From Saccostrea echinata (Eukaryota): DNA of 64,000 nt. This document shows positions 20,801 through 41,800 of this stretch, in pieces (the first letter of the stretch is position 1; each line of letters begins with the position of its first letter). The notes under the pieces are model-generated. The model saw only the letters and a program-made list of their open reading frames with translations, searched no databases and was not told the origin of the DNA. The position numbers were made by a program, and so were the translations under genes. The DNA is taken from contig NW_026889758.1 in NCBI RefSeq assembly GCF_033153115.1, forward strand, positions 8,060,001-8,124,000. The letters are read 5' to 3'.

Positions 20801-23800
20801 TATTCATTTTACAAGATATTCTACCACCAGTAATCAAGATGAGGAATAAAAAGATGATATTATGGATTATTCTTGAAAAATTCTGAATATAATTATTCCA
20901 ATAACAAATAATGGTTTTAGTAAGCTTTTCTGGAGTGTCTAAGGATAAGTAACAAATAGCTGTTAAAACAAACTACTTTGAATCATATCTACATGTAGTT
21001 CTGTAACATAGATTACTACACTGCATAAATCTGTTACTAAATATCTTGATTGATCATATATAGACAGTGTTACATATTGAGGCAAAAAGACACACAAAGA
21101 AAACAATGTTTTCATCAGATAAAAGATAAATATGAGTACACACTAGATAAAATAAAAGCTGACTACCAGTACACATCAGATAAAACAAAAGCTGAACACA
21201 AGTACACATCAGATAAAACAAAAGCTATAAATACAAGAACAAAAGCTAACTAAAGGTCACAACAAAACCTCACATTAATCATATTAAATCTTGGTGAAAT
21301 TTATATTGTAGTTCTAGCAACATGAACAGTAGTAAAATATTTTTCATTATTTTCCTGAAACAGATTATGGTTTATTTATATGAGTATCTGAACAAAGCTG
21401 CCCATTGACAAAAAAGATACCACATCTTACGCTTTTAGCTGATAATATAATGATTTGAATAATCTGTAGGTACATGTACATTTATTTCTTTTCAGTGGTG
21501 AAAGTGGCGCTGGAAAAACAGTGGCGGCCAAATTTATTATGGGTTTCATTGCCAAAGTCTCTGGTGGTGGTCCTAAAGTTCAGGTATCTTTTAAGAAATA
21601 TGGGTCAACAATAGTATAATAAAGAGAAGATAAGCCATTCATAATGCACATGAAAAAAATACTTAAATTAATATGTAATGTAGATTGAAAAGAGATTCAG
21701 TGTGTGTTATGCACATTTAATGATATTTAAAACAAAAAAACAAAAAACAAAAACCAGTAAAAAATGATTTTTTTTATATATATATATAATTTTAATACAT
21801 AATTATCATGAATCAGACTTAGGTAGAATTGTATTACAAGTATGTTTAAATAAAATTGTTTAATTTCTTTAAATGTTTAAGTCATCTTCACATTACAGAG
21901 AGTCAAAGATGTTATACTGGAGTCAAATCCATTGTTAGAAGCCTTTGGAAATGCTAAGACAGTCCGTAATAATAATTCTAGTCGATTTGTAAGTATAAAA
22001 GTGTTGAAGCTTATTCTTTTGTCAGTAATGTTTTTCTCAAGGAAGGATTCTTGTCTGGTTTCTGACTAGGTAACTGAGAACAGATTTGAGCCAAAAAATA
22101 ATTAAAATGTGTTTTTTCTCTCTTACTAAACCGTCAAAACCTTTTGTCTTTCTAACTTTTGTACCTTTATATGACTACTTCACCACATACGAAAATTTGA
22201 AAAAATTAAATATACGAAGCATATAAAAATTCCTGATATTCCCTAAAACTTTAAGAAAAATAGAGGAAATTGGGATTACACAATATCTACTTTAGTTATT
22301 TATCTTGATTTGGTAGTATCATCTTGCAGATCATATAAGGTGACATCTTTTATGCAGAAAGAAAAAAGGTTGTTCTTTTAAACTAGATGTAGGCATTACA
22401 TGATTGGCAGCAGATATACTGGTATTTTATTTTTAAGGTTAAGGAAAAAGCTAATGACCTTGACCCGATCACTCCTGAAATAAAATGGTTAAATTTTATG
22501 TTATTGATACCATCACTTAATGATATTGTCTTCTTGAATCTGTGAAAATTTCATTAATTTTTAAATACTATAAATGTGAGAAGAATCCCTCCTTAATGTG
22601 TTCTACAGTAAATATGTGGAGATGCAGTTTTTTTATTGTGTTTTAGGGTAAATATGTGGAGATACAGTTCAGTCGGGGTGGTGAACCAGATGGGGGAAAA
22701 ATATCAAACTTCCTTCTAGAAAAGGTAAAGGCTAAATGTAAAACATATTTGTACTGACATATATATTCATCCTATGACTTTAAAATGAATGTTTTTTTAT
22801 CAATGTTATAAGCAATATTGCTTTCTAAAGGTGGTAGTAATGCATTTGTACAGTGTCAGAAATAAAAATAAAAATTAATAATGATAAAAAAATAAATATA
22901 TGAACTCATTTTTCTCTGAATACTAAAACTGATTTAATTTGTAGACTTTGATTTTCACATGTTATTTAATATGGTTTTTTTTTTTGTGATTTTCAGTCTC
23001 GTGTTGTGATGCAAAACCAGAATGAAAGAAATTTCCATATTTTTTACCAGATGTGTTTTGGTGCTGACAATAAAATTAAAGGTAGATATGCAGACATGTA
23101 TATGAGAATAATGATGCTCTTCTTTCATTATGAATGTATGTTTTGTTAATTCTATGGGTCTACAGTCTGGTTGATCTTGATTAGTACATTTACTGGTGGC
23201 TGTGCATAACAGTATTGTCATCCATAATTTTGTCAAAATGTATTCAAAGCATCAGTATAGCTATTTACTATTTTACTGCATTTTCAGATTCTTTGATATA
23301 TCTTCTTGTTGCTGCAAAAGTTCATGCAATTATATACATTGTACCATTGTAATTTGTTACAGAGTCACTAGGTCTCACTAATCCAGATTATTATATGTAC
23401 CTGAATCAGAGTGGAGCTTATAAAGTTGATGGAACAGATGATGTTCAGGAATTCAAAGATACAATGGTAAGGCCCCTGTGGAAAGTAATTGTCTAGTACA
23501 TCTAAGGTTTAGTCATCTTTGAGGGAAAAAAATTGCTTTTTATGTAAATCATTCATGAGACATTGTCTGGCATGTTTCAAATACAGTTGAACTTCGGTAT
23601 CGTGAACACTAATATCTAGAATACCATGGATATGTCAAAGTAGTTTGAAATCCAAAACGCTTATTTTTATAAAGTATTTTACCCTCAATATATCAAATCA
23701 TTGGGTATCTTGAAGTTCTTTCTTGGTCCCATTGAGTTCAAGATAAAGAGGTTTGACTGTATTTATTGAAATTTCTGAAAATCATTCATATATTTTCTGA

Positions 23801-38800: not shown

Positions 38801-41800
38801 TTGTCATCTACAAAGGTTTTGAGGACATTAAATTCTGTCGTTTCAAAATCAACCATATTTGATATATAGTCATACAAAAATTAATCCCCAATGAATATTT
38901 CTGCTTTTATAGTATTTTGCATTCTAAAAATTCTCATAGAGAAAAGGAATATTGGATTATCATGAAAAAAATACAGTTACTGTAGTCTTCCCTTCAATAT
39001 GAATGTATTATTTTTAAAAATATTGAGAATAATATAAGATAATGTTGTTTTAGAATTGAGTTCCCTGTTAAGAAAGAAGGATGGGGAGGAGGTGGAACTA
39101 GGGTGATAAAGTTCCAGAGGCTACCCCAACCAAGTGATATAGCCATCCTTAAACCATCAGGGAAAACACTGACTGTTTCCATAGGTCCAGGATTACCCAA
39201 GGACTCGCGTAAGTAACTAGTGTTATAGCCATTGTCAGTCTCTAAGGCCAGGATTACCCAAGGACTCGCGTAAGTAACTAGTGTTAAAGCCATTGTCATT
39301 CTCTCATAATGATAGGCACCTATCAACAAAACGTGATACAGCTCTTTGTATAAAGTTACTGTTATAATGATAAATTTATTATATATCCCTCTAGTGTTAC
39401 ACCATTGGGTATATTATTATAACTAGTGTTATAGCTATTCTCAGTCTATCAGGGAAAATGCTAAGTGTTTCTAGAAGGCCAGGATTTTCCAAGCACTCGC
39501 ATAAGTATATAGTGTTATAAGCATGCTCAATCTGTCAGGGAAACCACCAGTCCTTGAGGCATAGATAACCCAAGAAGTTGGCGATGCATAAGTAATTATG
39601 ACCATGCTCAGTCCATCAGGGAAAAACAATCCAGATTACCCAAGAACATGCAAGTAGCTACTCATTTAGACACCATCAAACTATCCAGGGTGTAGGACCA
39701 CAGTTATTCTGTACTCAGCTACAGCTACAGCTACCCTCTTATCATTTATAGAGAACACATGACCATACATAGGCCAGGATTAATTAGCAAAGTGTGTAAC
39801 TTTTATGAAGTTCCATAATCTCAGATTTTGCATCAAGTCCGATTATTTTGACACCACATTTTTTTTTAAAGAATAATGTGGGTGCCATTGATTTATAATG
39901 AAATTTTCTCAATAAACAGAGCAAAAGTAACTCCAGGAATCATCTCCTTTAAATAGGAAAATGAACAGATGTGTGTATGTTTGATTATTCCATTTAATTT
40001 GTATGTAGGTCCTGGGAAGACAAAGATGGCAGTCAGTAATGGCAGCATGAGATCTAGAAGGGCGGGGTCACAAAGAGGACCCCCCTCAAGGCCTGCCCCT
40101 ACCAGACCTCCACCAAACTTTGCTCCACCAGCCATACCAGGGTCAGAACCACCACATATGGGAGGTAAGTTAATTCTGCATTGCAAACACAGGTAATTCT
40201 GGTGAGATTTTTAGATGATTCTTGCATGGAATTTTTTATTGAGTAAGTCTGCAAGAAGCACTAAGTCATGAAATAAAATTACTTGCATTTATCATATAAA
40301 AGTTCAGGAAATTTTATGTCTGAGAGTCATTTGGCAATATTAAGTACTTGTGTAAAATAAGGAATCTACAGTGTAGCAGAGTGATTTTCATTACCTGTAG
40401 GTTTAAAAAGTATCATGAAATTATCTGTTATAATTAACAAATTAATTTTATAATGAATCAAATTTGTTCATCTCTTGCACTTCACTGTATGTTTTACTGT
40501 ACATGTATAGGTACAATTTTAAGCCTTGAATGTGTTGATGTTAATGCTTTGCTTTGAATTGGCAATATTTCACCATTATGATGCTGGGGCTGACAATTTT
40601 TGTCACTTATTTGACTGTCATGTATGTACTGTATTTCAAACTTCAAAGAGAGGGACAATTAAATTTCATGTGTAGCATGAAGGAGTAGATGGTTAAATTA
40701 CACATACCCTTTGGAGTATACTTCTGACATTTAACCTAGTCTGTTGATAAATTGAACACATTCATCTTTTGTGGATTATGCTTTATTGAATTATACATAC
40801 ATGTACAATATTTCACAATTTAACCATAATGATTTCTTGTTGTATAATGTTAAATTAATGCTTACAATGTTGATTGATTTCTCATTATCAGGAGGAAAGC
40901 GGCGATCTCGCCTTAATAGTGACCATGCCCCCTCACTGCCTCAGGGTGGATTCCAACAGGTTCTACGGAGGAGTAAGAAGAATGCCCCAATAAACAATAA
41001 CTTCATGGCCACACCAGAAGCTGGCCAGGCAGGGTAAGTTTGTGAGAAGACATACTGCATGACGCTTCCTGAACAAATTAGATACTCGGTAACGTACATG
41101 TATTTGGAAGTTGAAGGTCTGATGTTTTAGTAAGCACAGTTGTATTATTGGAGACTCTGTGAGATCTACCATTTAAAGCTGTTTACCTCACACGTAACAC
41201 TTAAATAATAAGCCTAACAGCTCCAGACTCACTAAAACATGAAGAAGTCAATTTCTTTTAAAAATAAAAAAAATCTGTTTTGATAAGCAATGTTCTCAAT
41301 TCATTCAATAGTCATCACTCAGTATAATTTTATACCAAAGTTCCCCAATAGATGGTGAAAGGATGATAGAACAAATATAAATATTCACCTAGAGAGACTG
41401 AGCAGAAATAACATACTTATCTCCCCCTGCTGAAGGAATATAACACTAAAACACTAATAACAATGGTTCCGTTGTTCTGTAGAATTTTAGCCAAGTTAGA
41501 CCAGGAAAGAATGACGTCACAGTAAGTTGTGTGTTTGTTGCATGGTTTTAAGGAAACCAGTTTCTGCACCCCACTGTACAAATTAATGTCATTCAAAAAT
41601 TAATGAACTTTTTTTTTGTTAAAGTATTAACAAAGAAGTATATTTTTATGTTGCTCACCTGTTCTTTTTCTTTTCTTTTTTTTGTTGTTAGATTTTTTTG
41701 TTTGTTTGTTTGTTTTTTAAATTTATTATTTTGATGATTACAGTGAACATACTGGATATTTTTAAATGAGTTTATATACTTCACACAACAAGGGTTCTTC

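Follow-up and report, generated by a model that had tools for sequence, protein, structure and literature searches.

Minisatellites across eight splice junctions of a class I myosin gene in the oyster Saccostrea echinata

Why would the DNA across exon-intron boundaries be repeated in tandem, junction after junction, within a single gene, and how does such a gene keep its transcript in order? These questions are raised by a window of 64,000 nt from the oyster Saccostrea echinata (i.e., the whole stretch of DNA analysed, with coordinates counted from its first letter), which carries a gene for what is, judging from homology, a Myo1e/f-like myosin of the long-tailed class I. Its best full-length relative in tblastn is P0020, whose source name is unconventional myosin-Ie, and its exons, searched one by one, match the Pfam families Myosin_head, Myosin_TH1 and SH3; the head, the TH1 tail and the C-terminal SH3 that mark membership of the long-tailed class I are all present. 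AG/GT borders were found in 25/25 modelled exons, and in the joined-exon model the reading frame stays open, with zero stops, through exon 25. The parts of the gene are the following:

18199..46285, + strand: long-tailed class I myosin gene (tblastn, exon model, Pfam)
18199-40164, + strand: myosin exons 2-26 (exon model)
44138-44339 and 46208-46285, + strand: myosin SH3 exons (gene model, Pfam SH3)

Arrays were detected with Tandem Repeats Finder (TRF) and compared with the exon model, and the splice sites were scored by PWM. The original prediction had placed junction-spanning repeats at eight boundaries of this gene, and all eight were found, seven of them by TRF and the one at exon 11, a duplicate below the TRF threshold, by local alignment. 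At 8/8 junctions the unit combines exon and intron sequence, the exon contributing 9-51 nt of about 30-67 bp. The TRF consensus units agree with the earlier claim that no unit is related to another, and the between-copy identity, from 74% to 98%, bears out the range of ages that had been proposed. These are the repeats, together with an older copy at exon 25:

22593-22669, + strand: exon 7 acceptor duplication (TRF, 40 bp x1.9, 86% identity, 23 nt of exon in the unit)
23898-24427, + strand: exon 10 acceptor array (TRF, 65 bp x8.1, 93% identity, 20 nt of exon in the unit)
24860-24924, + strand: exon 11 acceptor duplication (local alignment, two copies of 27-29 nt, ~37 bp apart)
28609-29221, + strand: exon 12 acceptor array (TRF, 38 bp x16.6, 88% identity, 9 nt of exon in the unit)
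29742-29926, + strand: exon 13 donor array (TRF, 55 bp x3.4, 93% identity, 20 nt of exon in the unit)
30641-31484, + strand: exon 14 donor array (TRF, 67 bp x12.6, 97% identity; the unit is 51 nt of exon plus 16 nt of intron)
32136-32835, + strand: exon 15 acceptor array (TRF, 59 bp x11.8, 93% identity, 12 nt of exon in the unit)
39187-39304, + strand: exon 25 donor duplication (TRF, 61 bp x1.9, 96% identity, 22 nt of exon in the unit)
39425-39539, + strand: earlier copy, now decayed, that holds the final 76 nt of exon 25 and 39 nt of intron (local alignment)

The authentic acceptors of exons 10, 12 and 15 (24408, 29213 and 32824, respectively) belong to the last copy of their arrays, and the authentic donors of exons 13 and 14 (29761 and 30691) to the first. 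The exon 10 site (PWM 7.4) is accompanied by seven decoy acceptors scoring 6.2-7.6, and the exon 15 site (7.8) by ten scoring 5.4-7.9, while on the donor side exon 13 has two intact decoys and exon 14 eleven that are identical to the authentic site (PWM 9.9). The array of exon 12 is more mixed: AG is kept in 6 of about 16 decoys (8.0-10.2 vs. 10.3 for the authentic acceptor), and the other decoy units show AA where AG stands. Regarding the shorter repeats, the exon 25 donor (39208) has an identical decoy at 39269, the exon 11 acceptor (24909, PWM 8.4) has one at 24871 (7.5), and the upstream copy at exon 7 offers weak AG sites only (3.9-4.5 vs. 12.8 for the authentic acceptor, 22647). Most decoys are intact and score on a par with the authentic sites (7/7 at exon 10, 11/11 at exon 14), and the claim that the spliceosome meets many equal decoys stands, in the sense that up to 11 of them have the PWM score of the authentic site.

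The copies also tell something about how the arrays may have grown. The two copies at exon 11 (24860-24886 and 24896-24924) are identical at 27/29 positions, with an alignment score of 42 (maximum of 25 in 300 shuffles), and the duplicate at exon 25 consists of 57 + 4 + 57 nt, i.e., a 4-nt filler stands between the copies. The decayed copies claimed for exon 25 proved real as well, since 39133-39247 and 39425-39539 align over 115 nt with a score of 90 (shuffle maximum of 25). The young duplicates were examined for microhomology and nothing convincing was seen. Within the longer arrays, that of exon 12 has additional higher-order periods of 72 bp and 330 bp, and that of exon 15 shows variants common to its first and last copies and absent from the inner ones; higher-order periods and homogenised inner copies next to differing edge copies are typical of unequal exchange.

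How is the transcript spliced in the presence of so many alternatives? The RNA evidence consists of assembled transcript contigs from four runs of three studies, covering exons 12-16 (splicing at exons 7, 10, 11 and 25 is modelled), and contigs of this kind drop rare isoforms, so that low-level or regulated decoy use would escape them. Over these exons the joints listed, 25 further ones being outside the listing, are 29380|29591, 29761|30611, 30691|32824 and 32909|33917, the second and the third of which appear in each of the four runs; splicing takes the donor of the first copy and the acceptor of the last, and neither a new intron nor a new exon was found among the joints listed for exons 12-16. 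The exon-attached copy is spliced and up to 11 equal decoys lie idle in the assembled transcripts, therefore the myosin is unchanged, and the statement that the protein-coding mRNA remains intact, with the extra copies being intronic, is upheld by the canonical joints of exons 12-16. It had also been suggested that the arrays work as a splicing or NMD rheostat or as a source of microexons; this gained no support, as only canonical joints have contig support among the joints listed.

To judge whether the arrays favour junctions, the repeats lying elsewhere have to be counted too. Only one minisatellite away from a junction had been claimed, and two were counted (units of at least 30 bp, modelled part of the gene). 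They are listed here with a dispersed-repeat block which, together with the two arrays at its sides, makes up almost the whole of intron 14, and over which the summed contig depth ranges between thousands and about 90,000 in 4/4 runs, many of the pieces being mismatched:

18571-18651, + strand: intron-internal minisatellite, away from junctions (TRF, 21/31 bp, about 2 copies)
21121-21241, + strand: intron-internal minisatellite, away from junctions (TRF, 33 bp x3.6)
31490-32090, strand not assigned: dispersed-repeat block filling the central part of intron 14, with the donor array on one side and the acceptor array on the other (contig depth)

Two further arrays of the window (7721-7915 and 55618-55727) were considered as junction arrays and rejected, being outside the gene, with no adjoining exon and with a repeat-derived look.

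With the present geometry of the gene, 8/10 arrays at junctions corresponds to p=2e-7, and after removal of recognised repeats to p=6e-6; if every intron is set to 200 nt, 3.4 of the 10 are expected against the 8 observed (p=3e-3), all these values being for a gene chosen post hoc and under a null that depends on the intron lengths at the time the arrays arose. The junction arrays cluster, moreover, in six consecutive exons (p about 0.003). A comparison sample was formed by 19 non-self myosin loci, picked by homology alone, and by 30 kinase loci, which turned out to be mostly single-exon genes and were used only as a control of array density. In the unselected paralogous myosin loci, 5/13 arrays are at junctions vs. 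1.65 expected (p=0.012, in a small sample), and arrays of at least 4 copies number 10 in the intron-rich myosin loci vs. 0 in the 30 single-exon kinase loci. The junction excess in this gene is real, beyond chance placement, and a process biased towards junctions, which the original prediction had advanced, is moderately supported by the counts here and in the paralogues. Other parts of that proposal fared worse: a breakpoint at the junction itself gained no support, the position of the junction within the unit varying between 9% and 76% of its length, a distribution compatible with uniform placement (KS p=0.28), and the mechanisms that had been named (R-loops, pausing, methylation) were not supported.

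The phenomenon is found in other myosin genes of the assembly, with junction arrays at a donor and an acceptor of L006 and at donors of L013/L014, L023 and L029. L013 and L014, which are 96%-identical contigs and may be alleles or duplicates, differ in copy number (2.0 vs. 6.0), and one of them has an 877-bp insertion within the donor array. Related assemblies, in turn, lack the arrays: in their ORFs intron 13 has about 180 nt and no array, vs. 849 nt here, no decoy follows the exon 14 donor, and the exon 12 array was sought in P0001-P0003 and not found. Such comparisons point to a young and lineage-specific origin of the arrays. The 923-Mb assembly was searched for another haplotype of the locus with two short queries, which returned only the locus itself: 23850-24560 matches itself only, and 28560-31500 is matched elsewhere only via a 180-bp dispersed repeat. 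When a 12-kb query from the region is used instead, a 1.15-kb dispersed repeat dominates the assembly matches.

Junction-spanning minisatellites have been described before under the name of "mirages" in the amphioxus Adh3, troponin C, globin and PGBD5 genes, where both 5' and 3' boundaries are affected, splicing is normal, somatic instability was reported for Adh3 and a route to new introns was proposed (PMC3087553, PMC3902484). The likeness to the oyster is close: the unit lies across a splice junction on the donor or the acceptor side, AG/GT is retained in many copies, regular splicing goes on undisturbed (in the oyster, in the contigs of exons 12-16), and homogenisation affects the inner copies but not those at the edges. 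Haplotypes vary in copy number in amphioxus, and would do so in the oyster too if L013 and L014 were alleles. They differ in lineage (a lophotrochozoan vs. a cephalochordate), in density, which is unusual here (eight junctions in one gene, six consecutive exons among those affected), and in that the excess over chance placement has been quantified in the oyster. Another precedent is the 37-bp VNTR in intron 7 of human F7, which has its first element across the exon 7 donor and in which mutagenesis showed that identical, functional-looking pseudo-donors are silent and the most upstream donor is used (PMC1557585). The same choice is made at exons 13 and 14, where the exon-attached and most upstream of identical donors (29761 and 30691) is spliced; F7, however, is a single mammalian locus with donors only, whereas site choice in the oyster is read from transcript contigs, and the acceptor arrays, in which the last copy is used, have no counterpart in the F7 study. 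What is described here is therefore a known phenomenon, now in a new animal lineage; no bivalve report of junction-spanning minisatellites was found in the literature.

Two models of tandem duplication are also related. In the model of Rogers, an intron is gained by tandem duplication of an AGGT-containing segment (PMC3265369, PMC4974935, PMC2891723), and as in the oyster the tandem copy brings a second splice site next to the original one and is itself removed by splicing; that duplication, though, occurs within an exon and creates an intron, whereas the oyster copies only lengthen existing ones. Intron gain of this kind was considered and rejected, since intron 13 is at the same place in the related oyster ORFs without the array and the introns thus pre-existed. 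Microhomology-mediated tandem duplication produces duplicates of tens of bp, is linked to replication and is selected out of coding sequence (PMC13167724; bioRxiv 10.1101/2020.03.03.972455), but the young events with two copies (e.g., exon 25 with its filler) do not show microhomology clearly, and the mechanism alone does not predict a junction excess.

Taken together, the repeats are real, locus-specific minisatellites of the mirage type, and probably near-neutral by-products of minisatellite turnover. At each site, a segment of 30-67 bp across the exon-intron boundary was duplicated in tandem and brought to 2-17 copies via slippage or unequal exchange. The array extends into the intron only, because exonic copies would break the protein, and the authentic site is the copy still joined to the body of the exon, first in a donor array and last in an acceptor array; the arrays would be tolerated because splicing takes that exon-attached site. 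In the genes of this oyster that contain introns, minisatellites would be born and turned over at a high rate, yielding such near-neutral arrays with an excess at junctions of roughly three- to seven-fold. A candidate cause of the excess is breakage or template switching near junctions, tied to transcription or splicing, to chromatin boundaries, or to the border between a conserved exon and a highly polymorphic intron.

Could geometry and selection do without any junction bias? Duplication would then be uniform, ancestral introns would have been of 100-250 nt and exon-internal copies would have been purged; a 30-67 bp duplication touching an intron would often span a junction because such introns are short, and arrays and later transposon insertions would have lengthened the introns, therefore the excess would appear larger than it is. 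The short intron 13 of the relatives fits, as do the many introns here that are still 136-370 nt in the exon model, the composition of intron 14, the positions of the junction within the unit, compatible with uniform placement, and the 3.4 arrays expected with introns of 200 nt. Nevertheless, the 8/10 observed still departs from that expectation, the unselected paralogues depart from theirs on their own geometry, and uniform neutral birth predicts many arrays of at least 4 copies in about 85 kb flanking the single-exon genes, where there are none; with the clustering in six consecutive exons added, this reading is rather unlikely, though the strongest of the rivals to the mirage-type one.

An adaptive device, in which decoy copy number would regulate NMD or the efficiency of splicing, or provide microexons or new introns, is much less probable still. 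The intact decoys, as strong as the authentic sites, would suit it, the amphioxus literature suggests a passage from mirages to new introns, and the AA in the remaining exon 12 decoys could mean selection on decoy use, but homogenisation alone can spread that variant. Furthermore, the joints listed have contig support in canonical form only, in four runs, related assemblies are without arrays at the same junctions, and unrelated units between junctions and differing copy numbers in near-identical contigs are the behaviour of neutral minisatellites. That the repeats were mis-assembled or over-expanded is scarcely credible: copy numbers do rest on the assembly, which appears to contain uncollapsed haplotigs, but substitutions and small indels separate the copies in ordered higher-order patterns, a 102-nt contig of an independent run falls within the exon 12 array with zero mismatches, and arrays of this kind recur in several other genes and on both L013 and L014, which are separate contigs. 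Even less is to be expected from satellites brought by transposons that landed beside exons. Helitron- and MITE-type elements are common in bivalves, whose transposons carry internal satellites, and dispersed repeats adjoin several arrays (the 180-bp one at about 29920-30100, next to the exon 13 array, and the block at about 31490-32090), but every unit contains adjacent conserved exon sequence, and the units of 23850-24560 and 28560-31500 have no further genomic copy.

Beyond this gene, it is conceivable, although we would wager somewhat against it, that in oysters, as in amphioxus, a genome-wide process preferentially duplicates DNA across the exon-intron boundaries of spliced genes. Both animals are extremely polymorphic broadcast spawners, and a possible trigger would be the abrupt passage from a conserved exon to an intron highly diverged between haplotypes, where recombination or repair intermediates might stall and switch template; a splicing-coupled lesion would be an alternative. 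If so, introns would grow through junction minisatellites, convergently and measurably, and the arrays would amount to a natural library of experiments on competition between splice sites. Until now junction minisatellites had been known gene by gene in amphioxus and from one human locus; eight oyster junctions in one conserved gene, and others in further myosin genes, show that the phenomenon extends beyond cephalochordates. With an annotated chromosome-scale genome, a junction-focused mutational bias can be tested for, and, on the practical side, gene predictors and short-read variant callers will go wrong at junction arrays in bivalve genomes. The arrays are natural experiments on splice-site choice as well: a single intron of this gene pits up to 11 identical donors against up to 10 near-identical acceptors.

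The arrays lie in a long-tailed class I myosin gene on the + strand, which tblastn with P0020 (a related protein, unconventional myosin-Ie by its sources' naming) resolves into 27 coding pieces over 18.2-46.3 kb. The window corresponds to C9:8060001-8124000 in a 923-Mb assembly; a single-exon kinase ORF on a different contig has 100% identity to a Saccostrea echinata protein of NCBI, followed by Ostrea edulis (85%) and further bivalves, so the source is an oyster, in keeping with the bivalve assumed in the original prediction. The borders of exons 2-26 were set by hand; AG/GT is present at every one of them, the frame is open up to and including exon 25, and a Pfam search of each exon separately found Myosin_head, Myosin_TH1 and SH3 domains. 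Tandem Repeats Finder (TRF) places arrays over seven modelled junctions, with 9-51 nt of exon in each repeat unit, and alignment confirms an eighth at the exon 11 acceptor, a short two-copy duplicate, which confirms the tandem amplification of eight junctions claimed in the original prediction. Alignment also confirms an older, decayed copy of the end of exon 25. Besides these, the modelled gene contains no more than two minisatellites whose unit is at least 30 bp.

Minisatellites of the myosin gene detected by TRF
Exon 7 acceptor array, + strand, 40 bp x 1.9
Exon 10 acceptor array, 23898-24427, + strand, 65 bp x 8.1
Exon 12 acceptor array, + strand, 38 bp x 16.6
Exon 13 donor array, + strand, 55 bp x 3.4
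Exon 14 donor array, + strand, 67 bp x 12.6
Exon 15 acceptor array, + strand, 59 bp x 11.8
Exon 25 donor array, + strand, 61 bp x 1.9
Intron-internal, off-junction minisatellite, 18571-18651
Intron-internal, off-junction minisatellite, 21121-21241

Acceptor arrays extend upstream of their exon and donor arrays downstream, so that the real acceptor is the last copy and the real donor the first. The remaining copies (decoys) match the real sites in strength, as scored with a position-weight matrix built from this gene's own sites: the eleven decoy donors of exon 14 are all identical to the real one (score 9.9), the seven decoy acceptors of exon 10 score 6.2-7.6 against 7.4 for the real one, and the ten of exon 15 score 5.4-7.9 against 7.8. 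At exon 12, six decoys keep the AG and all the other decoy units carry AA. Every 65-bp unit of the exon 10 array also has a donor-like GTAGGG 15 nt past its acceptor, and an in-frame microexon of 15 nt might conceivably arise from each decoy there.

Transcript contigs of 2.5-3.5 kb from four public runs (two organisms, three studies) cover exons 12-16; the RNA or DNA labels of these runs are guesses, and the contigs are taken as transcripts because they skip introns. Among the joints listed, 29380|29591, 29761|30611, 30691|32824 and 32909|33917 all have GT..AG ends and match the gene model of these exons exactly, the first of the 12 identical exon 14 donors being joined to the final exon 15 acceptor copy. 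This evidence comes from assembled contigs, which lose rare isoforms, and spans a 6-kb stretch; for exons 7, 10, 11 and 25, outside it, splicing is modelled. One contig of run X2, over 29352-29615, leaves intron 12 (210 nt) unspliced and is a retained intron or pre-mRNA.

The frequency of arrays at junctions was compared with a null model in which each array is collapsed to one unit-length seed, placed at random in its intron and counted when at least 5 nt remain on either side of a junction. In this gene 8 of 10 arrays are at junctions, with 1.1 expected (p=2e-7; 6e-6 once recognised dispersed repeats are removed). The main rival explanation is that the pure geometry of short ancestral introns produces this excess. 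Assuming all introns to be 200 nt is not far-fetched, since intron 13, 849 nt here, is about 180 nt and array-free in related oyster assemblies (ORFs reading through it), and intron 14 here is made up almost wholly of two arrays plus a block of dispersed repeats; under this assumption the excess weakens to p=3e-3. As the gene had been picked for its pattern, the test was extended to 19 pieces, each centred on an exon of another myosin gene and chosen by homology alone. Of the 13 arrays in them (unit at least 20 bp), 5 lie across a junction whose exon was verified (1.65 expected, p=0.012).

Junction arrays in the homology-chosen myosin pieces
L006 donor array, 30 bp x 11.6
L006 acceptor array, 42 bp x 6.9
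L013 donor array of an IQ-motif exon, 53 bp
L023 donor array, 31 bp x 13.8, perfect GTGAGT in all copies
L029 donor array, 35 bp x 4.8

These intron-rich myosin loci hold ten arrays of at least four copies; no such array occurs in 30 kinase loci, most of them single-exon genes, with about 85 kb of flanking sequence. The junction arrays of the present gene are concentrated on six successive exons (post hoc p of about 0.003), and the junction falls at 9% to 76% of the unit, which fits uniform placement and indicates that the duplication breakpoints are not at the splice site itself. Taken together, a real but moderate junction excess of a recurrent array-forming process is partly supported. That much of the original interpretation stands, while the mechanisms it named (R-loops or pausing with slippage, chromatin or methylation boundaries) and a splicing 'rheostat' find no support here.

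The dynamics of the arrays are those of ordinary minisatellites: recent, recurrent and unstable. Copies are least alike for the old exon 25 copy (74% identity) and most alike at exon 14 (97-98%). Higher-order periods of 72 and 330 bp are present in the exon 12 array, and at exon 15 the two outermost copies have variants in common that are missing from the homogenised inner ones. Comparison of ORFs indicates that the exon 12, 13 and 14 arrays are absent from related assemblies. P0011, an ORF of another taxon (JGI/ENA/Logan contigs), contains FQSVN (translated intron end plus exon start) twice, 14 codons apart, directly before the exon 12 orthologue; this acceptor has been duplicated independently there. 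Between L013 and L014, myosin pieces on contigs C23 and C19 that are 96% identical, one array varies from 2.0 to 6.0 copies; an 877-bp element inside a donor junction array (L013:2173-3049), with a TTAA start and terminal inverted repeats about 16 nt long, is absent from L014.

We classify the arrays as junction minisatellites of the mirage type, which was named in amphioxus (Adh3 first) and for which this lineage is new. Mirages were later reported in genes for troponin C, globin and PGBD5, affect both boundary types, often keep AG/GT, leave splicing undisturbed, vary among haplotypes and lack a known mechanism (PMC3087553, PMC3902484). In human F7, the intron 7 minisatellite begins in exon 7 and the most upstream donor alone is used (PMC1557585). 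A search for bivalve, oyster or Crassostrea reports, with most subscription journals outside it, found nothing relevant. The arrays are probably near-neutral, and would be tolerated because the exon-attached splice site wins.

A dispersed element as the source of the array DNA searched was ruled out by genome matches: 23850-24560 matches only itself, and the sole outside matches of 28560-31500 come from a dispersed repeat of 180 bp (about 29920-30100). This SINE- or MITE-like repeat (1,826 first-look candidates, copies 80-85% identical) starts exactly where the exon 13 donor array closes with its last, partial unit, and shares the final 7 nt of that unit. A roughly 1.15-kb dispersed repeat occupies 26631-27781 in intron 11 (more than 23,000 first-look candidates; copies of 92-96% identity number in the dozens and are spread over many contigs), and one element occurs in both intron 9 (23581-23770) and intron 23 (38009-38221), part of it matching other genomic loci. 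Equal-score family matches pair contigs C14/C64, C19/C41, C19/C46, C54/C62 and C23/C19; the 923-Mb assembly probably contains uncollapsed haplotigs or very recent duplications. A 168-bp satellite array lies 3' of the gene (48575-50680; 12.6 copies, 89% identity), and 156 N at 62001-62156 mark an assembly gap or masked stretch.
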